Below are positions 1 through 31,803 of a stretch of DNA of 32,000 nt, piece after piece. The first letter of the stretch is position 1. Each line of letters starts with the position of its first letter. Below the pieces are notes generated by a model. The model was not told the DNA's origin. It did not search any database and saw only the letters and a list, made by a program, of their open reading frames with translations. The position numbers and the translations under genes were made by a program. This DNA comes from Wallemia ichthyophaga EXF-994 (taxonomy: Eukaryota > Fungi > Basidiomycota). The stretch covers positions 110,582 through 142,581 of the forward strand of contig NW_008806278.1 in NCBI RefSeq assembly GCF_000400465.1, in the 5' to 3' direction.

Positions 1-23
1 TAGCATCAGCGTTCAATTTGGCT

Positions 24-2490
24 ATGGAGCAAAGACAGCAGCAGAATCAGAACCAGTACAGAAGACACACGAGATCGCGTTCTAAGTCTGTCATTTCCGA
101 GGACTCGCAGCCATCCGTCAAAGAGAGCCATTTAATTCTGTCTACCCAGAACAGGCAGCCCTCCGAATCCGATCTCAGCGACAGCTACGACTATCAGCCC
201 GAAGACCAGATCGTCAGAGATCTCGAGCAGCGCGATCAGCAGCGCAAGAAGAAAGGTCAGTGGTTGGCTGATAAACTTCCCCAATACTCGCCCTCTGATA
301 ATTCAATCACCCCGAGCTCGAATAAGGAAAACGCTCAGACCCCTTTAGGCTCGAACAACTCCCAATCAAAGTCGTTTCAGGGGCCAGATAGTGTTTTGGG
401 TAAGAGGGTTAGAAGGCGTTCGCGCCATTTGGATAATGATCAAGACCAAGACGACGAGGAAGAAGACTTCTACCAACCTCGTGAAGAAGACAGCGGCGAC
501 GATCACATTCTCTCAGACGAAGGCAAAGACAGATCCAAGAAATGGCCCAAGTCTCGTCTGCAATTTAAAACCGTCGTCGATGGCAAATCAAACAAAAGAA
601 AAAAGTCGAGGAAGTCTAGAGGCTCAAATGCTTCAGATGTCGCGAGCGAAATATCTCTAGACTATAGAGAATCGAGCGCTTCGAATGACCATAAACCTTC
701 CGAATCGCTAGACGATCAATCTGTTTCTGTGCAGGATGATTACAGTGTAGATATTCTCCCACCAGACGACAATTTTAGCGCCCCTCCTCCTCCTCCTCCG
801 CCAGCGCCAAAACCAACTCAGCTTCCGAAATCTTTAAAAGCGACTGAACCTCTTCGTGCCCCTGCGATGCCGCCTCCTCCACTACCAAAAGCTGCTTCAC
901 CAAAGAAGCAGCCTACTCGCAGACTAGCCTCACCTCCAAAATCTAATATACCACCACATACACCGAAGAAATCACTGCTACAAATTCTCGCGCTTACAGC
1001 TTACGTCCCTGTAGTAGCTGCTAAAATATTCGCCAAAAACATAACCAACCACAAGAAATCGGTCGGTGTACTGCTCCTAGCAGCTGCATTGATTGTGGTG
1101 TCTAGATCTAGCGATGCTTCTATATCCAACTACATACCCAGTGTCAATCTAGGCGGCTCTTCGGAACCAATCGACGTCTCAGTCAAAGACTTCCAGAAGC
1201 TGTCGAGAGGTACCCAGAACCTGCAGCATATGATTGAGACCTTGAACAAAGATATGCAGCAGGTGAAGACGCGCGTCAAATATGGCGAGGATGCCCATGT
1301 GCAGATGCAATCGATACAAAACAAACTTGACGACATCACCAATACCCAATTAACTGAGTTGCAAGTCAGCAGGATCGTTGAGAAGCTCCTGCCTCACAGA
1401 TTGCTTGTGAGAAAGTCACCAACAGGGGAAGCAATAATCGACGATGCATTTTGGAAGGCTCTAAGGAGCGTGTTTGAAACCCAAAACACCATCTCGAATC
1501 CGAACTGGGATGAGTTCATCCGTGAAAACTCCGATAAGCTCAAACAATGGTTATATAGCGAAGGTGGCGTGGATGAGCAGGTAGTGAATAAATTAGAGTT
1601 TATGAATTTAGTGGATGAACGTGTCAGATCTTTTGTTAGCAACGCGTCATCCAAGAAGAGCGGTTTGAATTCATGGTTCAGGGGTGGAGGATCGATGCCA
1701 TCTTCCGAAGAGCTGCAAAACACGGTCAGCGATATTGTCGAATCCTCCTTGCGGCGCTACAGTGCAGATACCATTGGTAAAACTGATTATGCACTCTTTA
1801 CAGCTGGTGCCAGAGTGATACCGTCTCAAACATCACCAACGTACTCAATTACGCCTGTGAGCTTTGTGAGGAAAGTGTTGGGTAAGATGCTCGGCAGTGG
1901 TACCAGAGCGTATGGTCGTCCACCTGTCACTGCTCTTCATCCAGACACCAATGTTGGAATGTGCTGGTCGTTCCATGGCTCAGCTGGAGCGATAGGTGTC
2001 AAGCTGGCAAGACCGGCTGTACCCATTTCTGGATACACAATTGACCACGCGTCTCCTTTGCTCGTTCAAGATCGCTCGTCGGCGCCACAAACAGTCGAAT
2101 TGTGGGGAATATCCGATGACCAGAATCAGATTGAGAAAATCAAGGAAATCAACGAAGAGGTTATCGAGGAAATCAGTCGGGAGTATTCTGTTAATGAAGC
2201 TGCACCAGCTGGAAACTCAGCTTTGCTTGCTGTCGACACGTACGACCTCAACAAACATCACATACAAACGTTCGAAGTTAGAAATATTGTCAAAGAAATG
2301 GACTTCCGCGCTGATGCTGTTGTTTTGAGAGTTAATGATAATCACGGTAATAAGCATCATACGTGTTTATGTGAGTGTGGTTTCTCTTCAGTAGTATCAG
2401 CGTTAATAAACTCTCGCAGATCGCTTAAGAGTTCATTCTACTGATGACGGAAGAAGTGTATTAGACGATGATAACATCGATCAGTCGTAA
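24..2490 (+). CDS. SUN-domain (Sad1/UNC-84-like) inner nuclear membrane / spindle pole body protein, ~805 aa
   Basis: ATG at 24 (the ORF-track start at 18 is TTG). Exons 24-2370 and 2420-2490. The 49-nt intron 2371-2419 (GTGAGT..CAG) restores the SUN C-terminal motif TCLYRLRVH. Architecture: low-complexity and Pro-rich N-terminus, hydrophobic segment VGVLLLAAALIVVS, coiled coil, then SUN motifs DYALFTAGARVI, GMCWSFHGS, TIDH, SSAP. Confidence 0.9.
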
Positions 2491-2673: not shown

Positions 2674-4754
2674 CTATAATAATTGCGATGGTGTGAACAC
2701 ACTCAAGGCCATTTGTGATTCTTGGCCATCTTTGTCGACTATCGCATCGACCGGTACATATGTCACATTAGTGGAAACGGCTGTTTGGACTTTATCATGG
2801 TGTTAACGAGTTTCTCCAAGCAATCGCATACTCACCTTTGTCGAAAGTTATGGCTGATGAATAATATAACGTGCAAGCAAGAGCTCTTTCGAGTGTCCCT
2901 TTCGAGTACCCCTCATCAAAGAACTCAAACGATTGCAGTCCATCGTGGGATTGTGCAAGGTGCTTACGAACGATACCCTCGTCTTTGTAAAAGACATCTA
3001 AGGTTTCCTCTTTTCTTGCACTCTCATCATCGCTATCGTAATCGGTTTGCAGTTGACGATCATTGTACACAAATTGCCATTCGACAGCCGCATCTTTTGG
3101 TAATTGAGAGACCGCAACATAAATTTGAGCAGGCTCGTGTGTTTCTATACTCAAAAAATCTTCTGAACGCTCCGATGTTGCAACGACAGCTTGGCGTAAA
3201 ACGCGGCGGCAGATGTTGATATAATCCTTTGAAGAGACATAGCAGATGACGCTCTCGGGACGCATAAGCAGTTCGCCATGAGGTATATAAGATGGCGCTT
3301 GTCCCTCTGCCACTTTTCTTGCATGCTGCAAGGAAAGTATTGCCTGTTGGACAACGCCCCCCTCTACCAAAGACAACGTTGACGGCTTGAGTGCTATTTG
3401 ACCAGAAATGAAATGTCGGTTGTTGATCGATAAGCACTGGCTGTATGGTCCTATGTTTGCAGGTGCCCAGTATGATAGCCCACGTACATGGAGTGCACTT
3501 CTTGACTGGTCAGTGCTAGCCAGTATCGACATGCTGACTTTGTAGCCATCGCCTAGTGCGGTAGCCACACAAGCTCGCGCTGGTGGTCCACTACGTGTAA
3601 AGTATGCAGCGTAGGTTTTGTTTAGACTTTCAAAATCATTCATGTCGGCTATGTAAACGGATATGAAGATGACGTGCTTATCAAGTTGTAGGTTTTTAGA
3701 TTGCAGATGTACGCTTGCTTGTTGCAAGATATCTCTCGTTTGCTCTGCAGTTCCAGCTGTGCTATTGGTTGGATAGAGGTTGGATAAGCTATACCACTTA
3801 GATGTCTCCTTCATTGTAGCCCTTGGTTGGACTTCTTGATCTCTTTGCCGCCGAGAATCTACAACAGGACTGCTTGTAGAAGCGTTGAGATTGCTAAGTT
3901 GTATTTCTTGTGATATATCATCATACAACTCAGGCTGGACAAGTATTTGAAGGTCATTGCCTTCTTTTGGCTCAAGATGAGCTTTCTTGATACGCAAATA
4001 TGCTACAGGTGCCGTAGGAGAAGGATCGTGATAGACAATCTCGGTCTCGTCTCTTTGCCATGTCAAGTTACCATCGTCGCCGGGAAAAGCAAACTCACAG
4101 GACGATCCTCTGCTTGTACAAGGGGCTGTCTAGCGTGACAGTCTCAAACTCGCCACCCTCGCCGCAGACATGGGCACCGTATAGATTATGCAGCTTGTCG
4201 AGTGTTGGTCTGAGCTGTGCCAATGATTTACCCAGATGACGGTCTGGATCGAGACCAGCGCCGGCAACCTTAATTATAATCGAGGTCTGCTGAGCTGCTA
4301 CCATTTCATCCAGCAGCTTATCTTGCGGTCTCCTCCAAAGATAAGCCAGGACAGTCAAACCAAGTCTACTGCAGACGTGCTCGACGCGCACACGCTGGTA
4401 ATTAGACAGAATAGCGCCAACGCTCACACCCTGCAAATCTGCGTACTTTTCCTTGACTGATTTGAGGAGCTTGTAGAGATCTTCAGTTTCGTCATTTAGA
4501 GTCTCTTCGTAGCTGCTGGACTGGTTGATCGGAGTGCCCTTAATAACACCCTCAAAGAGCTCTACGCCGAGAGACTGCGCTATAAGCGGCAGAATAGACA
4601 ATCCAACTGTTTGGAACATGTAGCTGTCCATCTCCTCATACGCGTCGCCATTCTTCAAGTTTGCGACTGCGACGAGATGATGGCTGTTCTGCTGACAGTG
4701 CAGGAGATTAAAAATTGAGTCCTTACCACCTGAAATAAGCCCGACGTATTTCAT
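2674..4754 (-). CDS. DPH6: Diphthine--ammonia ligase with C-terminal RidA/YjgF-like domains, ~662 aa
   Basis: Exons 4754-4099, 4052-2836, 2789-2674; introns 4098-4053 and 2835-2790 (46 nt each, GTGAGT..AAG; an in-frame acceptor 9 nt further downstream is possible for intron 2). Motifs: N-terminal MKYVGLISGGKDS PP-loop, DSYMFQTVG, SNYQRVRVE, CGEGGEFET; RidA-like PPARACV and SYWAPANIGPYSQ. Confidence 0.93.
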
Positions 4755-4769
4755 TCTCTGATCGACGCA

Positions 4770-6509
4770 ATGAGAACGTTTACTCGAAAAGCAATCGCAC
4801 AGCATATTTTACAAGGTCAAATTCTGGTGATATTCGATAACAAGGTGCTGCGTTTGAACAGCTGGCTCGATACACACCCCGGCGGTGATCTCGCCATCCT
4901 CCACTTTGTCGGCAGGGACGCTACCGATGAAATCTCAGCTTATCATGATGACAATACGATAAATACCCTTCTGCCGAGATTTATTGTGGGTGAAGTGGAT
5001 AAAAGGGATACTGAGCCATTTTACCCGCTCACTCCGCCAGTTCAGCTTGGCTGGAGATGCGATAAAGTCGAAGGCGATACCACGCAGGCTTTCGATAAAT
5101 TTAAGCATGCTGAAGTGGACAACGACCGCGTCGCAGTTACGCCCAGCCTCCCAAAATCTAAGTTTGCTTCTATTCCGCTCACAGTCCAAGAGCTGGAGCC
5201 ACCAAGACCGTCAGACCCTAATCTGGATGCCCGGAGGCAGCACGAGATCTCTCGGCGCTACCACAAGCTCCACGATCAAGTCAAACGTCGCGGCTTATAC
5301 ACAATACAGCCCGACGCTTATCTGTACGAGTGCATACGATATGCCTCTCTCTTGGTGATCTTTGCATGGCTGTACTTCAAGATGGACTGCAAGGTCCTAT
5401 CAGCGATACCCTTAGGAGTCTTCTGGCACCAGATCACGTTTGTTGTCCATGATGCCGGTCATTGCGAGATATGGGGATCACAGAAAACGGACAAAACTCT
5501 GGCGTGCTTTATAGCTTCGTATATTGGAGGACTGAGCGCGAATTGGTGGTGTGATGTGAGTATTTTGAACCTTATCGGGATTTAATTAACTTAGATAATC
5601 AGAATCACGACATTCATCACAGTGAGTTGAGTTGGATTGGTGGCTGACATGCTCACAAACAATCGCAGTCGTTACGAACCATCCCGAACACGACCCTGAT
5701 ATTCAGCACATACCATTCTTTGCTATCTCAACCAAGTTTTTCAACTCAATGTGGAGCACGTACTACAGGCGAGTGATGGAGTTTGATGCATTCGCCAAGC
5801 TGGTTTTACCAATTCAGTGGGTTACAATATCCTATTGATTCTCCTCTAACAACAGCTCAGACACAACCTATACTATATTGTCATGTCAGTAGCACGCTTC
5901 AATCTTTTTGCCTTGTCGTACGCCTACCTTCTAACCAAGTCTCGAAACGACTGGTATAGAAATTTCGAGATCGTTGGCGTCAGTGTGTTCTGGACTTGGT
6001 ATGGAGGTCTCATCAGTCACATACCCTCACATTGGGGAAAAATTGGCTTCTTGTTATTGAGCAATATTGCTGCATCACCGGTACACGTCCAGGTGAGTAT
6101 CTACTTTCAATCTCGATCCAGCTAAAACTCGCTACAGATTGTGTTGTCACACTTCGCGAGATCGACGGATGACCTCGGATTGACAGAATCGTTCCCACAT
6201 AGACAATTGCGTACTACAATGGACGTTGCGTGTCCTTGGTATCTGGACTTTTTGCATGGAGGACTACACATGCAAGTCTCACACCATCTTTTCCCCCGCA
6301 TACCGCGCCACAACCTCCGTGCAGCGCGCGATATGGTAGCGAAGTTTGCGTCTGAAAATGATTTAGAGTACGCAGAGTATGGATTTGTTGCCGGCAATGG
6401 ACAGGTGCTTGATGTACTTCGAAATGTCGGCGAACAAGTAAAATTCATGTCTAAAGTGGCAGCGAGCGAGGCGTCACGAAAAGAACACCACACTTCAATT
6501 GTACAGTAA
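4770..6509 (+). CDS. Cytochrome b5-fused front-end desaturase, most like fungal sphingolipid Delta8-desaturase, ~518 aa
   Basis: Exons 4770-5555, 5603-5621, 5669-5816, 5861-6092, 6138-6509; introns of 47, 47, 44 and 45 nt. HPGG heme motif plus three His boxes HDAGH, HDIHH (encoded by the 19-nt exon) and QVSHHLFP. NHPEHDPDIQH is typical of SLD-type enzymes. Confidence 0.9.
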
Positions 6510-6600: not shown

Positions 6601-9600
6601 ATGCCACCAAAAACGCCATCGAGCTCGCAGTCTATGAAGCAGGGCAGCCTGTTCTCCGCTGGGTTCTTTAAGAAGACTCCCACTTCCTCTGCGCCGCCAT
6701 CTTCATCGCCAATGCATCCACCGTCCTCAACAAAGAGAGATGCCATCAAACCAAGTGGGTCTTTCGTGGTAGTGCAGCGATCTCACTGACGCAACAAGAC
6801 ACAGGTAACTCCTCCCCTCTTGCGCCTCAGTCAGCCGTTCAACACAAGAAAGCAAAAGCAGCTCCAATGTCCCCTTTGAACGAGAGCGCGCATTTAAATA
6901 GTGATGAAGATGAGGAGAACCAGCAGCCAAAGCGTGCAATAAAGAAGCGTAAGCCGATGGTGATCTCATCTGAAGAAGACGAGCCAGAACAGCCCAAACA
7001 AAGGCTCAAGAAGAGAAAGGAAAGCAACGACGACGATTTCATTGATGATGGCCCTATCGAAATGGATGAGGATGTCGACACCACGCGTAATAACCTGGGT
7101 GTTGAAGACTCTGACGACTTGATCGAGGAGCTGGACTTAGACGCTTTCGAGAAGGCAAAGCCAGCCGCAAAGCAAGCTGCAAAGAAACCGCTAGCTACTA
7201 CATCCAAGCCTGTCACAGAGACACCTAAACGTCAAAGTTCTGGTGAAAACAAATCACTCCTGACGAAAGCTGAACGTCAAGCACAACAGACTAAGGCTGC
7301 AAAGAAGGATTCAGACTCTCCATTCATGTTCTTACACCCTCCACGCGACAAATACCAAAACCCAATTGGCCATCCAGACTACGATCCTCACACTCTTTAC
7401 ATCCCGCCAAAATTCTGGAGCGAGTTTTCTCCATTTGAAAAGCAGTTTTGGGAAATCAAGTCTGACCACTTTGACACAATCCTCTTCTTCCAGAAAGGCA
7501 AGTTCTACGAGCTCTACGAGAACGATGCGATCATTGGACACCGCGAATTCGATCTCAAGCTGACTGAACGCGTGAGAATGTGCATGGTCGGTGTACCGGA
7601 GATGTCGTTTGATTTATTCGCGGCCAAGTTCCTAGCACTAGGTTATAAAGTTGGAAAGGTAGAGCAACGCGAGACTGCAATTGGCATGGATATGCGCAAC
7701 AAGGCAGATAAAAAGCCAGCAGGAGCGGCAGCAAAGGGATCTAAATCTGATGATAAGCTTGTGCGTCGTGAATTACGCTCTGTGTTGACAAATGGTACTC
7801 TTGTGGATCCGAAAATGCTTGCAGACGAAGCAGCTTCACATTGTGTATCAATCAAAGAGAATAGTAACAGTCTGGCAAGTAACGTACCTTCCTTTGGACT
7901 ATGCATTCTTGACGCTAGTACTGGTGAATTCAACCTCGCTACTTTCGAAGATGACAAGTCGAGATCAAAATTAGAGACCCTGATTAGACAGCTGCGTCCC
8001 AAGGAAATTGTTCATGAGAAAGGTAATCTGGATCAGCTCACTTTGCGTGTACTGAGGAACATTACGTCAATTTCATGCCTATGGACACCCCTCAACACAG
8101 GGAAAGAAGGAATGGATGCAATTGAAACTATAACAGAGCTTAAAACGCTATTCAAAAAGGGTGTCGAGGATATTGAAAGAGTCAAGCTGCCAGATGCAGT
8201 GGAAAGTATCGTCGAGAATACCGAAGCCATCGAATCGTTAGGAAACCTGATGTGGTATCTTCGATCACTCAACCTTGATCGTGATTTGCTGTCTCTTGGG
8301 AATTTCAACATATATGATGCCACACGTGAAGGTCAAGCTATGATCTTAGACGGTAGAACGCTGGCACATATAGAAGTTCTCGTCAATAGTGAAGGTAACG
8401 AGGACGACACTCTACTTAAGCTGCTCAACAGATGTGTTACTCCATTTGGTAAACGTCTTTTCAGGATATGGTTGTGTACTCCTCTGCGCTCGTCAAAGGC
8501 GATTAACGAGCGTTTAAACGCCGTTGACGATATTATATCCAATCCAGGTTTTACATATGAATTTGACAGTAACGTCAAAGGATTACCAGATCTCGAAAGA
8601 CTACTGTCCAGAATCCATGCTATGTCAGTGAGACCTAAGCAGTTTATACAAGTGCTAGGTGCATTCAACAAGATTCAACAAGTCTTCGAAAAGCTAGAAG
8701 ATGAAGCAAAGGAATTCGATTCGCAATCTCTCCGAGCAACGCTGAAATCCATACCCGATTTGAGAGATTATATATCAAATATTGAATCCAAGTTCGATTT
8801 GACTGAGGGTGAGACGCTGATGCCATGCGATGGTGCAGATGAAGCTTACGAGGAGGCGAAGAAGCTAAACGAAGAGCTAGAGGAAGAGCTCGACGAGATA
8901 CTTAACAAGTACAGACGTGAATACAAGACGAAGGGCATAAACTACAAAGATGTGGGAACGAAAGAGATATACTCGATTGAGATGCCAAAAAAGACATCGG
9001 TGCCTGCCAATTGGACGAAGATGTCCTCGACGCAGAAGGTAGACAGATACTGGTCACCAGAAGTTCGTCAGCTCGTACAGAAAGTAAAGGAAGCGCGTGA
9101 AACACGCACAACTGCTCTGGACGACTTTGCTAAGAAGCTCTATGTCGCTTTCGATGCTGATTACAAGACATGGATTGCAGCAGTCAAGGCGTGTGCTGAG
9201 ATTGATTGCATCAACTCGCTAGCCAAATCTTCAATTAACATGGAAGAGCCCAGATGCAGACCGAATATCATTGAGTCTAATGAAGCTGTATTGGAATTTG
9301 AACAGCTCCGCCATCCGTCTATGGCATTGAGGAGGGACTTCGTGGCAAATGATGTCAGATTGGGTGGTAAGGATGAGGGAACTATGCTGTTGACTGGTCC
9401 TAACATGGCGGGTAAATCCACTCTTCTTCGTATGACTGCTGCTGCAGTTATTATGGCGCAGATTGGCTGTTACGTGCCTGCTGAAAGCGCCACTATTGCC
9501 CCTGTTGATAGAATTGCTAGTAGACTTGGTGCCTATGACAACATGTTTAGTAACTCGTCGACATTTATGGTCGAATTGGCGGAAACGTGGGTATACGAGA

Positions 9601-10215: not shown

Positions 10216-10354
10216 GATTTCAGCATACCATTCCAGGAAGATCAACAAATTAGCAAAGAAGTCTTGTAATTCTCAGAAGATATAGCAAATTCTTTCCATA
10301 AAAACGACATACAAAAAAAGATAGAAGGATTAGTGGGGTGGTATAGAACTCAGA

Positions 10355-11007
<653 letters not shown>

Positions 11008-11044
11008 TTCGTTAGTGAGCGCACTTATTCAACAATCAACCGAA

Positions 11045-12462
11045 ATGGATCAGGATGAGTTTAAAATTGCGCAAAACAACTCAGATGACAGCGATGAGAA
11101 TGATAGCGCTGAGGATGAAGTACCGGACTATCGCCAGCTGGCCAGCTTCACGAACCGCAAATCAAAAGAGACGTACATTCCGCGCAGAGGTGAAAAGGAG
11201 TTCGAGCCATCTGGATTGAAAATACAACAGAAAGCTCTTGATGAATCTAGAGATGCCATGTTCAACGCTATAGACGGCGTACGCCAGTCGTCAAACAAGA
11301 ACATTAGCATTGGTTTGTGGTCGAATGCACACAGCAGAGCTAGCATAATTATACAGAGAGGCACACATTTCTCTTCTATAGGTCATCCAGTGAGAAATAC
11401 ACCGTCTAAGAGGGAAGGTAATGTTGAGAAGGTGGCTTCGGAGACCAGAATGGAATTGCTCCCAGAGGAGGCGCTCTATATGGTTGAGAGAGGCTCGCTG
11501 TTGTGTTACGAATACGAATGGAGCGACAACAACGACAAGATGCTGAAGCTGTCGACGAATGATAGCGCTGTTGATGAGCGCGTTGCCGGGCTGGCTCCCT
11601 TTTCGGCTCAGCGCGCTTTTGATTGCTGCATTGGCAAAGATGGCCTGACTTTGGAGAAGTACACTGTCTATGCACAGCTCAAAAGACTCGGATACATTGT
11701 TAAGAGAGCTCAACAGCAGCAGATAAAACCTGGAGAGCAGCCTGGATTGCTAGGCAGAATATACAACACTCTAAAAGGCATTGTCAACACCATTTTTTCC
11801 CCTATTGCAAGCTTTGTCAGGCTTTTCAACTTCAGAGTCACAACGTTGCTCGGCTCTCGCTCTAGTTTCCTCCGTCCACATCAAAATTATGGTGAGTTGC
11901 TTTTAGTCTGTCTCATAAGCTAATCAGCCCAATAGACTCGATATTCAAAGCACTAAGGCTGACTCCGTGGGGATACAACGACACGCCAGAAGTAAGCACA
12001 AGACTAAGTGAAGAGCAGCAGCACGAATTTGATGTAACATGGGATATATGGAGACCAAGCTCCAAGTTCAGGAAGAGCGCACCACCACCACCTGATTTCA
12101 GAATCGTAGTTGTCGACACGCACAAGTCATCCCTGCCCAGCTTGGAGCAGTTTGCTCATATATTCAGCCATCAGCCATACTCACAGCCACCACTCACGCG
12201 TAAGCAGAAGCTGGCTAAGGAGAAGGAAGAGAAGAACGGTAAGAAGCCAGAACTTGCAGTATCGGAGATAAGCTGGTTTTCAAGGTGGTGGAATCGCAAG
12301 CAGCTGGCTGCCGACGAGTCTAACAGGAAAAAGAGTCCTGCTGTGATGTTCCCTGCTCTGAAGCACGGAAAGCGTGCCGTTGTATTTGCTATCGTGGACT
12401 CAGGTACAACTTCGTGGATACAGTTTGGCGAGGGGCAATTTGGAGAGTTCCCTTTGTACTAG
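11045..12462 (+). CDS. SEN54: tRNA-splicing endonuclease subunit Sen54-like, ~457 aa
   Basis: First ATG at 11045 (the ORF-track start is GTG). Exons 11045-11891 and 11936-12462; 44-nt intron 11892-11935. Motifs IPRRGEKEFEP, LLPEEALYMVERGSL, YTVYAQLKRLGYIV, KFRKSAPPPPDFRIVV, AIVDSG. Confidence 0.82.
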
Positions 12463-12640
12463 ATGGGGAATTTGGATTTGTTGTATTTATTTGATTGCAT
12501 AGCGATATACACTCGATAAATGTGCCCAAATCGTTCGAAGGAAAAAGGCGGAGTAGCAGCCGAAAGAGGAAGGAGAGTTGGTTGAACGCAGTCGCCAAGC
12601 CCATGCCAGTAGCTGTGAATAACAATTAATTTTCACTGTG

Positions 12641-12664
12641 TAACCCTAATCATAAGCTATAAAT
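12641..12664 (+). promoter_or_regulatory. Telo-box-like TAACCCTAA (12641-12649) plus TATAAAT (12658-12664) upstream of the H/ACA snoRNA
   Basis: Both motifs are read directly, about 30 nt upstream of the first RNA hairpin. Telomere-repeat-like CCCTA elements are known at yeast snoRNA promoters (Tbf1). Function here is inferred. Confidence 0.55.
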
Positions 12665-12695
12665 TTGGCGTCTTCTCGCTCCCTCCTCTTCATCG

Positions 12696-20134: not shown

Positions 20135-22865
20135 TTAGTTATACGAACCAGAATTAATCTTGTCACGCAGAGTAGCTAACCACTGCGAATACGACAGACC
20201 CATCTCGAAGCGGTCCTCAACGAGAAGTGAAAGAGCCCATGAGCGGAGACTAGGATCGCCGTCTTCCTTAACGAGATAGAGGTGTGGTTTGTAAGGGCCT
20301 CTTCTCGACTCTCTAACCTTATTTACGATGCCATTCACGCGTGCGGACATGGCGTTATCGAGCAGTGGGAGTGTAATCTTGCCCGGTCTGAGATCTTGCA
20401 GAGTGGGCAAGTTAAAGACGTCGAGTACGAGTTGCGGCACGGCATCGCGACCGATCCACAAGAACATCTGTTGACCATCTTCAATTAGATAGAGTCCATG
20501 ACGCTCGAACTTCTCGATAGTGAGATTCAATCTGGGTGGGAGGACGAGTCCACCTTCGCTCAACATCCCAGCCTGTGAGGGTTAGTGTTAGTGTTGACAC
20601 CCTAAACAAACACTTTCTACTCACCTCGGCAGGCATGTTGTGCAGCGAGTAGAGCGTAGGGTAGAGATATGGTATAAGCGCCTGTGTGGGGAGGGTAGTG
20701 AGGAGAGTCTGGGCATAAGCGCGCAGATCTGATGGAATATGACTACTCTGTCTTAAACCAATATTCTTGAGTAGACCGAGAAGGAGAAGGGGAAGATGGC
20801 GCATGTTTTCGCTGACCATCAACTGCGCTGATGCGCCACCTCCTGCTGTCATGGTAGATTTGTATTGACCAAAAATATCGACAAGCTTGTTGAGCACTGC
20901 ATCTCGAGCATCCTCCAGCTTACTCGACTGCGAGCGCTCGACGGCCTTGTTAGCAAGGAGGGTGGCAATGGCATTTTCGTCAGCCGAAGCGTATATCTCC
21001 GCCGGATTCGACGATGTAGGCAGAGCGAGGGTAACTACGCGAATGCGACGCTCACCGTAACACGTCGTGTGCAGCACCGCAGTTTGGAACACGACAAATG
21101 GTACATTCAAGTTCTCCTCTAGTGTCACCTCCGCACAATAGGACTGGTCGATAGGGACAGTAGGCATCGCGAGGAGATCGGTGGAGCGCACGAAGAAATT
21201 ACCGTGGTACTCTGACATACGCACTCCACGTGTGGCGCGCACGCGCATTACGGCCTCAAGGGCGATAGGCGAGCTAAGGACGATAGATAGCTCGTGGGCC
21301 AATTTAAGCGCATCCTCAATCCGTGATGCATTAAAGCCGGGGTAGAAATAGGTACCGCCAGACGTGTACTTGGGGAGGCATTGCAGCGTTGCGACATCCT
21401 GGTATGGCGAACCAAAGAGGAACATGTCCACGGAGATTTGCGATCTGGAGCAGTCGATAGCGAGATTTTTGTAGAAGCCACCGCCTTGTGGTTGGAGTAG
21501 GGAGGACTCTTTAGTGGTTCCGAGGATCTTGATGTCTTCGCGATTCTTGAGTGCACCTTGACCAACATTGGGGAGTTGGGCAGTCATTACCATGATTTTA
21601 CCACCAAAAGGACCAATAAGCTGGACAGCGGCTTTGAGAGCAGTACCCATAGCAGATTCAGGACCAGAAGAGGAGATGAACATGTCAGACAGGTTAGAGA
21701 GAAGATTTTCAATAGCAGCTCTGCACTCTGAAAGATTAACGAGGAGGTCGTTAGGTGTAGGTAGGAAGGGATCGTCAAGGTCACCAACTACTAACATATT
21801 TGGATCAGAGCTGTTAGGAGGAAGATTGAAAAAGTGGAGAGCGTGATTAACAGCGATTAAACAAACTTTTGTTCTTCCGTCTTCGTTGGGAATACGATCT
21901 AAAGTCTCTAAAATAGTTCTCGCGACGGTTGCAACCATACCGGATTGGATGGAAGAGTAAGAAACGTCGATCAAGAAAGCGTAAACGGGAGGCTGAGGAG
22001 GTCGAACCATGTACTCTGAAGGAGCAACGAATTCAACGACAGAGTGATTCAATTCAGCTCTATTAAAGCGATCAGTAGGCTGATTAGTGATTGGGTCCCA
22101 ATCGAACATCTGAGGAACTTCATTTGAGAGGTTGCAAATGGAGCACTTCCAACGAGTACCACCTTCTAAAAAGGTAACGTAAGGGTTTATGTAAGTTCTG
22201 CATCTTCTGCATCTGGATATAACCGTGTCAGTGATGACAGGGATATCATCTTCACCTGAGTCGATGGAGCGGTAAGGGGTGAGTATAATAGATAAGGGAA
22301 TTTTAAGTTTGTTGATTAGAGATTGAGTTGTTGGTACAACGTTGAGTGTTGATCTCTTGAACGAGTGGTGAGCGTTGGCGGTGGGGGAATTGGAGATTGA
22401 TGCATTGGGTGGGAGTTGAACCGGAGGCGGTGGGTTATCGTAAATGTCATTAGGATTTGGTTGGTAGCCGATGAGATTGATTGAGTTGGCAGTAGAGCGG
22501 GGTTTTGAGTTTAAATCAAATTGGCTGAATTGATTGGAGAGATTGTTGAGTGGTTGGTTGGATTCAGTGGGAGCACCACCACCAACGCCAGCACCACCAC
22601 CTGGAGTGAATAATTGCTGTGGTTGAGCTTGCTGTGGTTGCTGTGGAGCACCATAATAAGCCTGGGCTTGTTGATTAGCTAGTTGCCTTCTAGCTTTCTG
22701 ATTGGTTGCAACAGAAGGAACTTCCCACTGAGATTGATTGGTGAGTGTGTTGACATAGTAAGCTTGACCAGTTGAAGGGTCGCTAATAGCAATTTTAGAG
22801 AAATCACTCTTGAAACGCAAGGCTTACGTATATTCCAACCAATTTGGAGGTAGATTCGTAGACAT
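20135..22865 (-). CDS. SEC24: COPII coat subunit Sec24 with an N-terminal WW domain, ~877 aa
   Basis: Exons 22865-22828, 22782-20625, 20572-20135; introns 22827-22783 (45 nt) and 20624-20573 (52 nt). Zn finger [17 protein letters not shown], trunk [25 protein letters not shown]-terminal gelsolin-like repeat. Splicing the 38-nt first exon creates [31 protein letters not shown]. Confidence 0.95.
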
Positions 22866-22920
22866 TGGTGATACTCAACCTGGTTGAACCACGTCAAACG
22901 ATATATTTGAGGAGATTGAA

Positions 22921-24036
22921 ATGAAAAATAAATTAGTTGAATGGATAAATAGTGAGGAGAGTTATCTAAATTTGGATATTAGAACACTAGCCTATGCAAC
23001 TCAATACAGTAATCATTATATGCTCAACAACCAGCCATTCAAATTCGTAGTCTTGTTTGGATATTTACTTACGATTGAACTTAAATTTGGTAAACTAATC
23101 TTTTATTTGGAAGATGGTACTGATGTTATACGTTGTTTTCTGCCTATTCAAACTGATTCTTCACCTCAATTCTCTATCGCAGACGCTGTTTCCATTACGG
23201 GAAAATTAGACACTTACAACAACAAACGCATCATTTACATCAACAGCATTGCGAAGCAATCGAATTTAAACTTGGAAACTCATTCTATCGCGCTTGTTGA
23301 TCAGGCTGTTCACAACTCTCACTCTTTCATCCTCCCTTCCTCCACAAATCTCATTAAACAATCTGTAGACTCCCAAACTCGCCCTAGAAAGAAACCTAAG
23401 CTTACTTCGAAACTCTCTCATCCTTCGAAACTCTCTCACAATGACCTTACCCCGCACACTTTCGAGATTTACATGAAGAATTTCATCAATCTCAATTCAC
23501 AGCATAACATATCTATCTTATCACTCAAACTGAGTAACTCTCTACGACTACTCGCTCGAAGGCTTTACGATTTGAGACATCAGACAAGACTTAATCCATC
23601 ATCATCCTCGGAATCAAAACACGCCAAGATAGATAGGTTATACACTCAATCACTCAATAATTTAGTGAAGAAAGGAGAACTCATCGTATATGATGCTATT
23701 TCATTTGATTCTAGCTCGATCGAACTAACTGAGCCACCATCACAAGATGAAGATGACCCCCTAGAATCTGACTTGAGTGGTTTATACGAACACTACAAAT
23801 GTCCTTCTGGACCTCTACTTAAAGACGCGTTATTCAATGTCATGTCTAACCTCAAACATCAAGCATCTCTTCAAATCATCCACAATAAAGTCACAAACTA
23901 CCAAGAGAACCTCTCTACTCTCTCACAAGATAGCATCCAGATTGGTCTCGATTGGTTGGTAGAGTATGACTACGCTAGCGTCACTAAATGTGAAAACAAA
24001 CCCGATAAATATAAATTAACAATAGCTACCGACTAA
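22921..24036 (+). CDS. OB-fold protein, probably CST-complex subunit Stn1, 371 aa, intronless
   Basis: N-terminal OB-fold pattern VVLFGYL..YLEDGTDVIRC..VSITGKL..KRIIYINSI..NLETH resembles Stn1/RPA2 OB folds. Length and a helical C-terminal half fit Stn1 better than RPA2. The sequence is divergent, so the call is moderate. Confidence 0.6.
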   Translation: MKNKLVEWINSEESYLNLDIRTLAYATQYSNHYMLNNQPFKFVVLFGYLLTIELKFGKLIFYLEDGTDVIRCFLPIQTDSSPQFSIADAVSITGKLDTYNNKRIIYINSIAKQSNLNLETHSIALVDQAVHNSHSFILPSSTNLIKQSVDSQTRPRKKPKLTSKLSHPSKLSHNDLTPHTFEIYMKNFINLNSQHNISILSLKLSNSLRLLARRLYDLRHQTRLNPSSSSESKHAKIDRLYTQSLNNLVKKGELIVYDAISFDSSSIELTEPPSQDEDDPLESDLSGLYEHYKCPSGPLLKDALFNVMSNLKHQASLQIIHNKVTNYQENLSTLSQDSIQIGLDWLVEYDYASVTKCENKPDKYKLTIATD

Positions 24037-24506: not shown

Positions 24507-24530
24507 GAGGTGTTATACAAGTGGGTCAAT

Positions 24531-24725
24531 CTAATAGAAAGGCGAGGTTAGATGGGTTTGGTTATCTACGCCAGCCACGCTTCCACGTTTCAGAATGTGG
24601 TAAAGTCTGATGTCGACATGCGCTGTGCATTAAGACAGGGATAACTGTAAGAAAGTACTTCTCATCAGGGTGTACAGCGTGTACAACGCAGAAGCGTGGA
24701 TGGCTGTAGCTATGGCTAGACTTAC
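24531..24725 (-). other. RPB11 5'UTR intron 2 (195 nt), snoRNA host
   Basis: GTAAGT donor at 24725, CTAAC branch at 24551-24547, pyrimidine tract and TAG acceptor ending at 24531. This leaves a 24-nt leader before the RPB11 ATG. Confidence 0.75.
24587..24672 (-). ncRNA. SNR38: Box C/D snoRNA, snR38-like (guide for LSU Gm2815 equivalent)
   Basis: C box TGATGA (24667-24662); 13-nt antisense CAGTTATCCCTGT (24647-24635) complementary to LSU ACAGGGAUAACUG; D' variant CTTA (24634-24631); D box CTGA (24593-24590). The +5 rule selects the middle G of GGG, i.e. yeast G2815 in the peptidyl transferase centre. End coordinates are approximate. Confidence 0.88.
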
Positions 24726-24727
24726 AC

Positions 24728-24903
24728 CTAGAAGGGTTGTGAGTGGGAGTTGTGTGGGTGCAAGACACCAGAGCAGATTTGATCAGTAAGAGATTCCTGT
24801 GTCTGCACGTATAGTTTGATTATCTAGCTACTAAGACGATTGACAGATTGATTTGGATTTTTGATATTCCTCATTTCAGCCTGGTGTCTTGTGCGCTACT
24901 CAC
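24728..24903 (-). other. RPB11 5'UTR intron 1 (176 nt), snoRNA host
   Basis: GTGAGT donor at 24903, CTCAC branch-like motif at 24743-24739 (the same variant occurs in the KAP120 and NOP58 introns), TAG acceptor ending at 24728. Confidence 0.7.
24780..24878 (-). ncRNA. Box C/D snoRNA, SNORD110-like (guide for SSU U1231 yeast / Um1288 human equivalent)
   Basis: C box variant ATGAGGA (24874-24868) and D box CTGA (24786-24783), closed by a TGA/TCA stem in kink-turn geometry. 14-nt antisense TCAATCTGTCAATC (24851-24838) is complementary to SSU GAUUGACAGAUUGA and is followed 2 nt later by D' CTTA (24835-24832). Flanked by an 11-bp perfect inverted repeat. Confidence 0.8.
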
Positions 24904-24945
24904 AATTATTTTTATAGTGGGTGTACGGGAGAAGGCGCGCGGTTG

Positions 24946-24960
24946 TTTATATAGGGTGGG
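24946..24960 (-). promoter_or_regulatory. CCCACCC-TATATAAA promoter element for the snoRNA-host/RPB11 transcript
   Basis: TATATAAA at 24953-24946 lies about 43 nt upstream of the first donor. It overlaps an ACCCTA core resembling telo-box or Homol-E elements. Confidence 0.55.
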
Positions 24961-25370
24961 TGGAATAAAAAATGGAAAATATTCACATGTTTTCTTCCAC
25001 GGTGTTGATGGTGCTATGAATAGCCTTACCCACACCGCAGTCACTGCCGCGTTTCATGCCGCCTGCACTTGATAGCTTGTACCTGAGTGGGTGGAGCAGA
25101 AGCCATAGGAGTTAGTCATAGGAGGTAGCTAGCGCATAATAAGCCCACGAATATTCTACCGCACCCACGATAATCAATCCCCTGCAGCTAAAATCTTCGT
25201 CGCTAAAACCCCTTTAGCCGCTCCACTGACAAGAGAATACGCTGTTGATTGCAAATCATCAGAAAAAACTTAAATCAAGTAGATAGCACGCTACTCACCT
25301 CAAAAAACTCCAAAATTCTGTACAAAACAAGCAACCACTTCAGTTCCATTAACGAGTACGATACAAGCAC

Positions 25371-27146: not shown

Positions 27147-30111
27147 TTAAGACATGGTCTCATTAATAAATGCGACGAGCTGCGCAACGACAGTGTGATC
27201 GGCATTTGCGAGGAAAGACTGATTAAAAGCGTCAGGACCGCCCGGAAAGGATTGTTGGGCGTGAGCGAAGCTATGAGAGATAAGAGGGGGAATGGGGAGT
27301 GCGGCGAGGGGGTCAGTGGAGAAGAGGGTGAGTCTGCGCGTCTTCTCGCAAGTGCCTTCATCACCGACGGCGTTGAGGAGGGGGTGTGTGATAGGGGTGT
27401 GAGAGTGAGTGTGGGGAGTAGTTGAGTCGGGCTGCTCTCCATAAGCCACAGCATCCAGGTGATTCTCCCTAATCTGGGCGAGGATATCTACAAATATGCT
27501 ACTGAGCTCAGCAAGGCGAGTGAGAACGAGTGGTATGCCGTGCTCGACGAGTCTAGCTAGCCCAGCAGCTGCGAGAGCGCGACTGTACTCGTCGGAAATG
27601 TTATCCCACCTATCGCACCACCTGTCGAGGAGAGCGACGAGCGTGGTTTGTGGAGACACACCGAGCACCTCCGCGGCGCATTCGAGAAGATGTAGAAGGA
27701 GGGGTGTATCAACGAGGGCGATGCGCGCGCACACAACCACGAGCTGCGCAGAGAGAAGCACCGACTCGCTCTCAGAAAGCAGCTTGCTAACTATGGCAGG
27801 GAAGAGCCCAGAGGTGTGCATGTCCCCCCACCAGGTGGCAGGTGGGGCGATTAGGGCGGCGAGGTGGACGAGGTGAATTGCTTGTGCGCGTACAGCATCG
27901 CTCGCATACTCCACCACACCGGCGCACGCTCGGAACAGAAGCTGGGCTGTCTCGGACTCACTCACCACCGCCATCCCACTGAGATACATGTGCGACTCGA
28001 TGAGAGCGCCTGCTGGCTCGCTCAGGTCGACGTCGTTGGCGAATAGCTCCACCGCCAGCGGGAATAGCCCGTGGATGGAATCCGTGTGTCCCGCTGCGTG
28101 CTTGAGCGTAACCTGCCACAACTCTATCGCGTCCATGTCGATGTATGGTTTGCCCTGGGTACGTGAGTGGGTATGTGCGCAGCGCAGAGCATCAACCCAC
28201 CTGTGCTGGATCCAGCGCTGTGCGTATGAGCGGCACGACTAGTGGGAGAGCACGTTGGCTGCCCTCCTGCATAACGCACACGAGACGAGCGAGCAACGCC
28301 AGCATGCCGCCGCGAAGGTGCCAATCGGCGTCGGCGCTAGAATCGCCATCAGCCTCCCACAGCCCGCCTACCATTTCGAGGAGAGGAAGGGCGTGGGGCA
28401 TGGACATATCCCCGACTTGATCCACGATACACGTGAGGCTTGCGAGCACCTTGGTCTTGATTTCGCCCAGTGTGCACGCAGCGAGAATGCGCATCAGCTC
28501 AGCCACCACCGCCCCCATGTAGGGCTCGAAGAGGGCAGGAGCAAAGTCCCACGTGTCTACTATCCCAGCGAGGGCAATCGCAGCTGAAATCTGCACTGCG
28601 ACGTCGTTCTCGGCATCTTGCGCGCGCAGACAATGCAGTATGATTGTGTACACTTTCGTGCGTGCGCTTGGCGTGAGATTCTCACCAGCGAACCGCCCAA
28701 CGAGGATAGCTATGCGACGGCGCAGGATGCGGCCGTGGCCTACACTGTCCACCTGCACCTCGGGGATCAGCGTAGTGTCGAGCCAGCGCTCAAACGATAC
28801 GTGGTCATAGAGGTATTCTGCACACTTGGCCACTATGCGGTACACGCCCTCTTTGTAGATGACGTCGCTGCTCTCGGCGGCAGAGTGGAGGAGGGATGTG
28901 AGGTGCGCGCCAACGGCCCCACGTCGCTTGATTAGCACAGCGAGAACAAGGTTCTGGGCACACGGGCGCAGATCCACCTCCCAGTGGTCGAGGTCGTCCT
29001 CGTAGACCCAAGTCTCAGGATCAGATTCCCAGCGGGCGAGGTCGGCGGGAGTGAGAGGGAGGAAGCGGCGGGCGACAAGGTCGACGACTTGGACGGCAAA
29101 GTCGTCGGAGAGGGAGGCGTGTGGGTTGAGCTTGTGCGGCGCGTGGGGGACCCAGTCGGCGAGGGAGAGTTTGAGGATGAGGAGGGCGTGGATGAGGTAT
29201 TTAGGAGGGGCGGCGGGTGAGGATGGGTGCGTGCAGTGGGCGATTTGCGAGTACAAGATCGGTATAAGCGCCTCGATGCCTTGGATGCCGCGGAAACGGC
29301 CTTGATTGGACTGCTGGAGACGGAGGAGGAAGCGTGTGTGGGCGTTGAGAAGCTGGAGGGGCGGGGAGCGCGATGAGTGGGTGCAGTCGAGTAGGCGGGG
29401 GAGGAGGGAGAGCTGGAGCTGGGTGAATTGCACCGTGTTGGAGCGCTCATCGCCCGAGCACCGCGACCAGTTGTGGAGGGAGAGCGAGGCGAGCACCTTG
29501 TACGCGTACGTCGCCAGGGATATCCAATGGGGGTGGGAGGCTAGGTGGGAGAAGGCCAGCTGGTAGACAGCCAAAGCAAAGGGGAAGAGGGACGCGTAGA
29601 GAAGGGGGAAGACCCTGTTGGCGATTCTGATAGACGCGATTTCCTTGGTGATTCGGTGGAGAGCGTACAAGGCGTGGCTGAGCCGGAGGAGGTGGCCGGG
29701 CTCGCTCACAGCCAGCTCCGGAGACAGACGCGCCTTGATGTCGTCGACCAAGCCTGGCCAGAAGCGCGGGTAGTCGATGCGGGCCAATTTGGAGAGAATG
29801 AGCGCGTTGAGCTCGGTGAGCTTGGCGTCGGGGCTGTCGAAAAAGTCGAGGCAGCGGGCGCGGATGGCGTGCCTGGCCCCGGGGGACAGCTGGGGAGCAC
29901 GGATGTTGCGCCAGTAGGGAAGGATGTTGTTCTTCACGAGGAGGATCGCCGCGAGGGAGAGCGTCGGGTCGGGGGAACGCAGGGAGAAGTCGTGCAGCCC
30001 GTCCAGCGCATCTGGCTGCCTCACGAAGGCATCGACAGCGTCGAGTACATTTACGCCGTCATCCACAATTTGTGCACTTGCCAATTTTAATAAATTTTCA
30101 ACCGAGTGCAT
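27147..30111 (-). CDS. KAP120: Importin-beta family karyopherin, importin-11/Kap120-like, ~972 aa
   Basis: ATG at 30111 (the ORF-track start is a non-ATG codon 25 codons upstream). Exons 30111-28201 and 28154-27147; 46-nt intron 28200-28155. IBN-N region AILLVKNNILPYWR, SKLARIDYPRFWPGL, WESDPETWVYE, DLRPCAQ, ILRRRIAILVG, DFAPALFEPY. Confidence 0.85.
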
Positions 30112-30149
30112 TGGTTGGAGTGGACAGCGAACACCAACGACCAAGGAAA

Positions 30150-31803
30150 ATGCTGATTCTGTTCGAAACCTCACTTGGCGTGACACTGTTTAAAATTAAG
30201 GATGGCAAGCTCGAGGATCCCGATCTCCACAAGGAGTTCGCCTCCCCCGACTCTGCTTCGTCGGTGTGAGTAGACGCCCACGCAGCCAGCCCCGCTCACA
30301 CCCCACAGCCTCAAGCTCAAGGCCATTCACAAGTTCAACTCCACCACCGAGGCCCTCGAGGACATCACCCAGCTCCAGGACGGCAAACTGTCCAAGTCGA
30401 TGAAAAAATTCTTGCAGGACAACGTCGCCGACGACAAGAAATCCCAGAACCTCGCTGTCATGGATCCGAAGCTGGCTTCCACTATCGCGCAGAAGCTCAA
30501 CATCAACGTCGTCTCGGACTCGACCACGGTCGATCTCTTCCGCGGTGTCCGCCAGCAGCTCCCGCACCTCCTCAACGGCATCGAGCAGCACGACATGGAC
30601 ACCATGTCCCTCGGTCTCTCCCACTCCCTCTCCCGCTTCAAGCTCCGCTTCAGCCCCGACAAGGTCGATGTCATGGTCATCCAGGCGATTGCCCTCCTCG
30701 ACGACCTCGACAAGGAGCTCAACATCTACGCCATGCGTGTCAAGGAGTGGTACGGGTGGCACTTCCCTGAGATGGCAAAGATTATCAGCGACAACATCGC
30801 CTACGCCAAGATCATCAAGTTGGCTGGTTTCAGGACGAATATTCCGTCAACTGACCTCTCGAGCCTCCTCCCCGAGGATTTGGAGCAAGCCATCAAGGTG
30901 GCTGCTAACATTAGTATGGGTACTGAGATCTCTGACACCGACATTGAGCACATACTCAGTCTTTCTGAGCAAGTCATCAGCATCGCCGCCTACCGCCAAG
31001 AACTGTACGACTACCTGCGCAACAGAATGAACGCAATTGCACCAAACCTCACAGCTCTCGTTGGTGAGCTTGTCGGTGCCCGTCTCATCAGCCATGCAGG
31101 CTCTCTCACCACTCTCGCCAAGTATCCCGCCTCAACTGTCCAAATCCTCGGTGCCGAGAAAGCACTCTTCCGCGCTCTCAAGACGAAGCACGACACTCCT
31201 AAATACGGTCTCATCTACCACGCCTCCTTGGTAGGATCAGCACCACAGAAACTCAAGGGTAAGATGGCACGTATGGTGGCTACCAAGACCTCCCTCTCTT
31301 CACGTTTAGACGCACTCGCCGATGCTGAAACTAAAGCTGATATGGACTCAGCTTCTATCGGTATCGAACAACGCGCTAGCCTCGAGAGTAGACTCAGAGC
31401 TCTCGAGCGTAGCATTGGTATACAGAGGACACGCAATGAAAGTGATGTTGGTAGCAAGAAACAAAACAAATTCGATTATGACGCTTCTAACGGCAACGGT
31501 ACCGCTACTTACAACTCTAACACTGACAATCTCCTCCCTACACAACCAGCTCAGCCATCTAATGGTGCCCAAGGTGCAGACGGCCTCTCCGATAAAGAAC
31601 GTAGAAAAGCTGAAAAGAAGGCTGCTAAGGCTGCTCGTAAGAGTGAAGTTGGTGACGCAGGCGAGGATTCCGCTGCTCCTTCAAAGAAGCGCTCGAGAGA
31701 CGACGACGAAGATGTCGACGCCGATTCACCTAAAAAGGAATCCAAAGAAGAGAAAAAGGCGAGAAAGGAAGCTAAGCGTGCCAAGAAAGCTGCCAAGGAG
31801 TAG
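30150..31803 (+). CDS. NOP58: Box C/D snoRNP core protein Nop58, ~536 aa
   Basis: Exons 30150-30265 and 30309-31803; 43-nt intron 30266-30308. [35 protein letters not shown] (Nop58-type rather than Nop56-type), [19 protein letters not shown]-rich tail. Confidence 0.95.

Follow-up and report, generated by a model that had tools for sequence, protein, structure and literature searches.

The stretch of DNA analyzed here, referred to as the window, comprises 32,000 nucleotides of the genome of Wallemia ichthyophaga EXF-994, the type strain (KE007228.1:110582-142581 of GCA_000400465.1). Its last 11.85 kb are 100% identical to GCA_000400465.1 KE007228.1, and the 467-amino-acid open reading frame (ORF) at 30400-31803 is 100% identical to W. 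ichthyophaga Nop58. This species is a free-living, extremely halophilic basidiomycete with a compact genome of 9.6 Mb, of which 73.6% is coding sequence (CDS), with 4884 genes and 2.4 introns per gene of ~61 bp (PMC3849046). Near the left end of the window, the genes for DPH6 and for a delta-8 sphingolipid desaturase are adjacent and arranged head-to-head on opposite strands. Both are housekeeping genes, and their functions, diphthamide synthesis for DPH6 and sphingolipid desaturation, are unrelated. The two CDSs do not overlap and are 15 bp apart. The locus was compared with lineages designated L001 (~84% nucleotide and 95% amino acid identity to W. ichthyophaga), L008/L009 (89% amino acid identity) and L002-L007, which form an AT-rich lineage (32% GC, 64% amino acid identity), and with W. 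mellicola (GCA_004918515.1). Its features are as follows.

2795..4754, minus strand: CDS of DPH6 (diphthine-ammonia ligase), 637-amino-acid product; exon 1 4754-4099, intron 4098-4053 (46 nt, GTGAGT...AAAG), exon 2 4052-2795
4752-4754, minus strand (CAT on the plus strand): start codon of DPH6, kept in L001, L008/L009 and L002-L007
4755-4769: spacer TCTCTGATCGACGCA between the start codons, 15 bp
4770-4772, plus strand: start codon ATG of the desaturase
4770..6509, plus strand: CDS of the delta-8 sphingolipid desaturase with an N-terminal cytochrome b5 fusion; exon 1 4770-5555, four introns of about 40-47 nt, stop codon 6507-6509
4803..4805, minus strand: in-frame ATG upstream of DPH6, not a start codon, inside desaturase codon 12 (His)

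A sequence-only reading of this DNA had noted the 15-bp gap and had held a mis-assignment of the two starts to be unlikely. The gap was recovered exactly, as CAT-TCTCTGATCGACGCA-ATG, and the assignment of the starts is borne out by domain boundaries, by the N-termini of homologues and by an identical N-terminal length in four lineages. In DPH6, residue 1 corresponds to position 1 of the Pfam model Diphthami_syn_2 (E = 4e-37), the C-terminal half matches Ribonuc_L-PSP (E = 8.5e-25), and the SGGKDS of the PP-loop ATP-pyrophosphatase domain occupies residues 8-13, the domain content of a DPH6. Its N-terminus, MKYVGLISGGKDS, fits the invariant MK[YVF][VI][AG]L[IL]SGGKDS with which DPH6 proteins of fungi and animals begin; N-terminal extensions are absent from all the homologues compared. 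The next in-frame Met is residue 42, past the SGGKDS loop, and a start there was rejected because the loop would be lost. The desaturase has a Cyt-b5 domain at residues 5-76 (Pfam, E = 1.8e-15) and its spliced reading contains the histidine boxes HDAGH and NHDIHH; Cyt-b5 with HPGG followed by a desaturase domain is the architecture of front-end desaturases. Its homologues contain PF00487 and bear the names delta8-fatty-acid or sphingolipid 8-(E)-desaturase. Upstream of the desaturase ATG, an in-frame TGA occurs at a distance of 13 codons; the next Met is at about residue 205. These comparisons of sequence show that the ATGs at 4754 and 4770 are the real start codons of DPH6 and the desaturase.

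Exact-protein matches of the closest DPH6 ORFs led to syntenic contigs of three further Wallemia-type lineages, all of which keep the arrangement, so that four such lineages share it. The distance between the ATGs is 15 bp in W. ichthyophaga, 17 bp in L001, 9 bp in L008/L009 and -2 bp in L002-L007. In the last of these, the AT-rich one, the start codons overlap by 2 nt, as CATG, around 10000-10003. The desaturase N-terminus up to HPGG is 39 residues long in all these lineages. DPH6 has a ratio of nonsynonymous to synonymous divergence (dN/dS) of 0.03 and the desaturase one of 0.16; synonymous divergence (dS) is 0.5-0.7 to L001 and saturated to L008. Both genes are thus functional and under strong purifying selection, and the arrangement is old. 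It is not shared by basidiomycetes in general: in Schizophyllum commune, DPH6 faces PheRS-beta at 110 bp, and an ancient basidiomycete origin of the pairing was rejected on this ground. A metagenome scan with DPH6 yielded no further Wallemia lineage, the best match being 56% identical.

We considered the possibility that the promoter problem is an artefact, one start being mis-assigned or one gene being dead or unexpressed. An in-frame ATG does lie 51 nt upstream of the DPH6 start, and GenBank start calls in the region are sometimes wrong, as with 23020 instead of 22921 in a gene discussed below. Yet both N-termini coincide with domain starts and with those of homologues, no downstream Met keeps the SGGKDS loop or the cytochrome b5 domain, the dN/dS values are low in both genes, and the arrangement recurs in independent assemblies of four lineages. 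A DPH6 start at the ATG 4805-4803 on the minus strand, corresponding to the mechanical ORF 4095..4805, would mean a 36-nt overlap of the CDSs; this candidate was ruled out, as the ATG is out of frame in L001, where it opens an 18-codon upstream ORF, and the extension occurs in no homologue. We therefore regard an artefact as very improbable.

With 15 bp between the ATGs, the promoter signals and the mRNA leader of each gene must lie inside the CDS of its partner. An intron in the 5' untranslated region (UTR) that would bring a distant promoter to the desaturase was rejected, because the spacer contains no AG that could serve as 3' splice site. Given the ATG-to-ATG distance, the transcription start sites (TSSs) of the two genes are almost certainly less than 1 kb apart. 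The sequence-only reading had concluded that the transcripts are either near-leaderless or overlapping, with promoters inside the partner CDS. As logic this holds; of its two branches, overlap is the one favoured by three indirect lines of evidence, namely the CATG of the AT-rich lineage, a depletion of upstream ATGs and the position of an A/T-only box. The first is the simplest: where the start codons share nucleotides, non-overlapping transcripts are impossible.

The other two lines of evidence draw on the further divergent pairs of the window, of which three are tight and one is not.

11005..11047: calmodulin/Sen54, ATG 11007-11005 (minus strand), spacer 11008-11044 (37 bp), ATG 11045-11047 (plus strand)
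22863..22923: Sec24/OB-fold gene, ATG 22865-22863 (minus strand), spacer 22866-22920 (55 bp), ATG 22921-22923 (plus strand)
30109..30152: importin-11/Nop58, ATG 30111-30109 (minus strand), spacer 30112-30149 (38 bp), ATG 30150-30152 (plus strand), GenBank models
24507..25370: long divergent spacer, 864 bp, between an RPB11-like gene (minus strand) and an amino-acid permease (plus strand)

The divergent spacers given earlier (15, 37, 55, 38 and 864 bp) were all reproduced, four of the five being 55 bp or less. For the OB-fold gene this depends on the start chosen. GenBank places it at 23020 (338-amino-acid model), which would leave a spacer of 154 bp; the W. mellicola orthologue (L013 2817-3850) starts with the upstream Met, leaving 43 bp to Sec24, and the internal Met of the W. 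ichthyophaga gene is a Ser in it. For these reasons 55 bp is preferred over 154 bp, and the GenBank start is probably truncated, judging from the orthologue. This orthologue is unannotated in W. mellicola GCA_004918515.1, and the Pfam match of the OB-fold gene is weak (tRNA_anti-codon, E = 0.003).

Leaders are normally purged of ATG triplets, and the DNA upstream of a start codon in a tight pair is mostly the antisense strand of the partner CDS. In bulk CDS, the sense strand has 14.3 CAT triplets, the antisense of ATG, per kb. Upstream of the eight tight-pair starts, 5 ATGs were found within 150 nt where 17.1 were expected (P = 6e-4), whereas the zone from -300 to -151 contained 17 vs. 17.1 expected. 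Over 22 genes from five lineages, the counts were 17 in the near zone and 52 in the far zone (P = 3e-5). The depletion is ~3-fold and strand-specific, same-strand CAT not being depleted, and it ends sharply near -150 (successive bins of 1, 4, 1 and then 10, 4, 8). It was also seen when the partner's 5' CDS was resampled with synonymous codons: 4 ATGs were observed vs. 10.06 expected in W. ichthyophaga (P = 0.009), 1 vs. 5.1 in the AT-rich lineage (P = 0.005), 2 vs. 4.7 in L001 and 0 vs. 2.0 in W. mellicola. Calibration of this procedure gave 288 vs. 276 for interior CDS and 9 vs. 8.9 for the 5' ends of control genes that are not in tight pairs. These findings suggest that, in the partner's first 35-45 codons, codon choice avoids ATGs on the opposite strand, which is expected only if the leader of the other gene runs through these codons.

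The third line of evidence is a run of at least 8 nt of A and T only, present at -50 to -73 of the ATG in six of the eight tight-pair genes of the window and usually the sole such run within 200 nt, although the position range and threshold were picked after inspection of the data, which weakens the count. Boxes were recorded at the following places.

4804..4811, minus strand: A/T box TAAAATAT (DPH6 sense strand), within desaturase codons 12-14, at -50 to -57 of the DPH6 ATG; a TATA-like candidate element of DPH6
4707..4716, plus strand: A/T box ATTAAAAATT, within DPH6 codons 13-16, at -54 to -63 of the desaturase ATG; a TATA-like candidate element of the desaturase
11060-11068: A/T box for calmodulin
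10972-10984: A/T box for Sen54
22924-22935: A/T box for Sec24
30083-30098: A/T box for Nop58
30189-30199: A/T box for importin-11, at -78 to -88

As background, such runs are present in 24 of 389 interior CDS windows. The A/T fraction is maximal in the bin from -60 to -51, at 0.74 in W. ichthyophaga and 0.79 in the other lineages. Box centres lie at -53 to -67 from the downstream ATG and at -23 to +43 relative to the ATG of the host gene; this constancy on one side and variability on the other argue for a role as upstream element of the gene that the box precedes. At the site of the DPH6 box, the desaturase codons CAT ATT TTA CAA are identical in three lineages, and the AT-rich lineage has CTATATAAT at the position of the desaturase box. 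The W. mellicola permease has a canonical TATAAAA at -50 and two further genes have similar boxes at -51 to -63, which suggests that this geometry is a general one.

These observations bear on a model in which the mRNAs are near-leaderless, both TSSs lying in the spacer and the leaders measuring 0-15 nt as in microsporidia or Giardia, with little or no overlap. A spacer of only 15 bp invites this idea, as do the 5'UTRs of <7 nt in the compacted genome of Encephalitozoon cuniculi (PMC2803860) and the composition of the 37-55 bp spacers, each half of which, read in the sense of the gene next to it, has the A/C-richness of a proximal leader. Yet in the AT-rich lineage even fully leaderless mRNAs would overlap, the ATG depletion extends past the spacers into the partner CDS, where it is seen at synonymous sites, and a box at -60 predicts a TSS near -30. 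No shared motif was found in the 10-20 nt upstream of 13 start codons, which have only the usual A/C-rich fungal context; a CCC-like motif of the E. cuniculi type directly upstream of these start codons was not found either. Furthermore, fungal cap-dependent scanning reads AUGs closer than about 12-20 nt to the cap poorly. Because of the CATG overlap, the ATG-free zone and the box position, we hold the near-leaderless model to be less likely than crossed units, and unlikely in itself.

A second alternative lies in the opposite direction. The overlap might be long, with promoters at least 100 nt deep in the partner gene and the A/T boxes acting as nucleosome-excluding sequence rather than as TATA-like elements. 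An ATG-free zone that reaches about -150 and ends sharply there speaks for such a model, as do the ATG-free stretches of similar length (110-300 nt) ahead of those genes of the window that have ample upstream space. A leader length of this order is also known from the basidiomycete Cryptococcus neoformans, with a median of 105 nt; the mean in Saccharomyces cerevisiae is 84 nt (PMC7049704). The constant distance from box to ATG argues instead for a short, fixed geometry, synonymous conservation is not raised 100-200 nt into the partner genes, and in three lineages ATGs precede DPH6 at -45 to -53. A long overlap thus seems rather unlikely to us.

The reading that we favour, and consider reasonably probable on this sequence evidence, is that DPH6 and the desaturase form crossed, 5'-overlapping transcription units in an old, genuine head-to-head pair, with the TATA-like box of each in the first codons of the other. 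The TSS of each gene would lie at or beyond the start codon of its partner and the mRNAs would overlap at their 5' ends. As core promoter, each would use a TATA-like box made up of A and T only, about 50-70 nt ahead of its ATG and within the partner's first 10-20 codons. In most non-Saccharomyces eukaryotes, initiation occurs ~30 nt downstream of a TATA-like box; here this would give leaders of about 20-35 nt, with some starts up to about 150 nt upstream, as the ATG-free zone suggests. The first codons would then have to encode the protein, contain the promoter element and avoid antisense ATGs, three constraints at a time. Polymerases coming from opposite sides would collide head-on, so that one template would probably fire one gene at a time. 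Ordinary initiation by RNA polymerase II (Pol II) and ordinary scanning would suffice, with no new initiation mechanism. The contigs carrying two annotated Wallemia Nop58 proteins were all long and genomic, none of them being transcript-derived.

Several observations weigh against the crossed units, in addition to the after-the-fact choice of box range and threshold. The chance of finding a run from the amino acid sequence alone is 0.24, 0.29, 0.28, 0.24, 0.05 and 0.42. Synonymous-site identity is not raised in the first 20-40 codons (0.37 vs. 0.38 for DPH6; 0.47 vs. 0.36 for the desaturase, n = 15). Apart from the short A/T box, nothing thus points to an embedded element of strong sequence specificity, and the idea that a promoter element inside the CDS is strongly conserved was dropped for this reason. 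L008 shows no depletion of antisense ATGs (5 observed vs. 5.5 expected). DPH6 itself has upstream ATGs at -51 in W. ichthyophaga, at -53 and -8 in L001 and at -45 and -19 in L008; those at -8, -19, -45 and -51 would be harmless only with a very short leader, which for this gene alone fits better than a long one and speaks for the near-leaderless model. Finally, the ATG and A/T tests were conducted on 8-22 genes, the orthologues among which are not fully independent.

The sequence-only reading went further, in proposing a systematic, ultra-compact bidirectional mode of initiation. What stands is that tight spacers recur in W. ichthyophaga, L001 and W. mellicola; the word systematic overstates the case, in view of divergent spacers of 82-864 bp and of variation between lineages. 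In L001, the calmodulin/Sen54 spacer is 38 bp and the SUN-domain gene and its neighbour form a further tight divergent pair (spacer 55 bp). The importin-11/Nop58 spacer is 38 bp in W. mellicola too, where the divergent spacers measure 43, 38, 112 and 856 bp. A divergent pair just outside the window has a spacer of 82 bp. Against a systematic mode, orthologous pairs in the AT-rich lineage are 219 (calmodulin/Sen54), 184 and 146 bp apart, other divergent pairs lie at 82-112 and 856-864 bp, and tandem (58 bp) and convergent (about 130 bp) spacers are short as well. The 146-219 bp spacers of the AT-rich lineage consist of A/T-rich noncoding DNA.

Within the window, the convergent spacers are 350, 139, 128, 132 and 137 bp and the tandem spacers 357, 715 and 604 bp. 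The median is 38 bp for divergent and 137 bp for convergent spacers, with tandem spacers at 357-715 bp. A set of 45 Saccharomycotina genomes has median spacers of 517 bp (divergent), 405 bp (co-oriented) and 158 bp (convergent), divergent ones being longest "as previously observed among fungi", and a yeast promoter requires about 115 +/- 50 bp (PMC6993858). In the W. ichthyophaga clade, divergent spacers are thus the shortest class, the reverse of the Saccharomycotina rule, in a sample of ~8 divergent pairs that is not genome-wide. From Table 1 of PMC3849046 we calculated a genome-wide mean CDS-to-CDS spacing of ~373 bp; with an exponential distribution of this mean, a crude model, the chance of a spacing of 55 bp or less is P = 0.14, and that of four such pairs among five is P ~0.002.

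Very short spacing is not confined to divergent pairs. About 4.8 kb to the right of the window, only 58 bp (L011 16703-16762) separate the stop codon of a Pkr1-domain gene from the ATG of a tandem gene for a 2237-amino-acid kinase/response regulator; an AATAAAA 57-63 nt upstream of this ATG shares nucleotides with the Pkr1 stop codon. Among the five convergent spacers, four measure 128-139 bp (10216-10354, 20007-20134, 24037-24168 and 27010-27146). This is about the length of one Cryptococcus 3'UTR (median 127 nt; PMC7049704), and by this analogy convergent mRNAs, too, probably overlap, at their 3' ends. Because the sample is small, the spacing varies between lineages and all classes of spacer are short, we prefer compaction over a dedicated mode. 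In our reading, the tight pairs look like the outcome of a genome compaction driven by deletions, which has shortened the divergent spacers most and involves no dedicated initiation machinery.

The remaining genes of the window, and the full extents of those named above, are as follows.

to 2444, plus strand: SUN-domain gene, which begins upstream of the window
6867-10215, plus strand: MSH6-like MutS
10355-11007, minus strand: calmodulin
11045-12462, plus strand: Sen54
13178-14288, plus strand: TauD-family dioxygenase
14893-19264, plus strand: P4-ATPase
about 19530-20006, plus strand: NAC
20135-22865, minus strand: Sec24
22921-24036, plus strand: OB-fold gene
24169-24506, minus strand: RPB11-like gene
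25371-27009, plus strand: amino-acid permease
27147-30111, minus strand: importin-11
30150-31803, plus strand: Nop58
24583-24673, minus strand: C/D-box small nucleolar RNA (snoRNA) candidate, sub-threshold

The 864-bp divergent spacer had been said to hold snoRNAs. None was found there at Rfam thresholds; the single C/D-box candidate scores 27 bits with snoR38, vs. a gathering score of 45 (E = 0.068), and has TGATGA near its 5' end and CTGA near its 3' end. Rfam and tRNA scans of the window gave no family at gathering score and no tRNAs. The 715-bp gap between Sen54 and the TauD-family gene (12463-13177) has no convincing ORF; small genes or noncoding RNAs could hide there and at 19265-19529, ahead of the NAC gene. 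The SUN-domain gene runs in across the left edge (window 1-24) from a start upstream of the window, and its N-terminus in L001 is MNTLSNSTSVTIASAFNLAMEQ. Calmodulin (10738-11007, minus strand) has tiny 5' exons of 15 nt (MADQL), 7 nt (ACTGAAG) and 12 nt (AACAAATTTCCG), with introns of about 50-60 nt between them; a branch-point-like CACTAAC lies 4 nt upstream of its ATG, probably by coincidence. Importin-11 and exon 1 of Nop58 (27147-30400) have a GC content of 0.55-0.65 and a GC content at third codon positions (GC3) of 0.78, vs. 0.475 for CDS genome-wide; the W. mellicola counterpart has 0.35-0.46, and this GC island is local and lineage-specific. The AT-rich Wallemia-like lineage (30-32% GC) is present in many ENA and Logan metagenome assemblies, with contigs of up to 258 kb, and is distinct from W. 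mellicola (69-74% nucleotide identity).

The most noteworthy point is the possible inversion of the intergenic-length ranking. Extrapolating from the present sample, we raise, as a speculation that we ourselves find somewhat doubtful, the idea that Wallemiomycetes invert the fungal spacer rule genome-wide. Head-to-head pairs would then mostly share a module of ~120-150 bp, in which the partner's first codons contain each TATA-like box, ~60 nt before the ATG that it serves, TSSs are crossed, N-terminal codons are triple-coded (protein, partner's promoter and partner's ATG-free leader) and the genes fire alternately through obligatory head-on interference. A free-living eukaryote would have retained all of this over tens to hundreds of millions of years. 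If the crossed units are real, Wallemia would be a free-living, culturable fungus that routinely has Pol II core promoters and leaders in the CDS of the neighbouring gene. It would offer a natural system for the minimal dedicated DNA of a eukaryotic promoter, and would show coding and regulatory constraints sharing the same nucleotides as well as tolerance of head-on transcriptional interference in well-expressed genes (calmodulin, Nop58). If there is ordinary compaction with short leaders, what remains is a caveat for annotation and an extreme data point for the rules of fungal intergenic length. Gene finders do miss or mis-call genes at such loci, as the start at 23020 and the unannotated W. 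mellicola orthologue illustrate.

We found no paper on Wallemia that deals with divergent spacing, TSSs or bidirectional promoters; the genome paper of W. ichthyophaga reports compactness and contains no UTR or TSS analysis (PMC3849046). Head-to-head pairs, 5'-overlapping antisense pairs and compaction-driven overlap are already known, and Wallemia represents a new, rather extreme case in a free-living fungus. With classical bidirectional pairs it shares opposite strands, facing 5' ends, a short common control region and a pairing conserved between species. In these pairs, however, the TSSs are back-to-back and diverge from a shared nucleosome-free region of ~100-1000 bp, whereas the ATG-ATG distance in the tight pairs described here is -2 to 55 bp, which would place the promoters in coding sequence and cross the TSSs.

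A closer geometry is that of 5'-overlapping divergent cis-natural antisense pairs, a minority of mammalian head-to-head pairs, which have the complementary 5' ends proposed here. In the known pairs, the overlap usually lies in untranslated first exons, whereas in Wallemia it would take in the partner's first codons, seemingly in most of the divergent pairs sampled. Compacted genomes (E. cuniculi, Antonospora locustae, nucleomorphs) resemble Wallemia in that signals are pushed into neighbours and transcripts overlap adjacent ORFs on either strand. The ribosomal protein genes of E. cuniculi have an AAATTT-like upstream signal (PMC2803860), which resembles the A/T box of Wallemia. Microsporidia and nucleomorphs, however, are obligate parasites or endosymbiont remnants with genomes of 2-3 Mb, 5'UTRs of <7 nt and very few introns, whereas Wallemia is free-living, with 9.6 Mb, 2.4 introns per gene and leaders that would be longer than the spacer. 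Giardia has short A/T-rich initiator promoters at the TSS, leaders of 0-14 nt and bidirectional transcription. It shares with Wallemia a small A/T-rich element near the ATG and a compact genome; in Wallemia, by contrast, the box lies about 60 nt upstream, in a fungus with canonical cap-dependent scanning.

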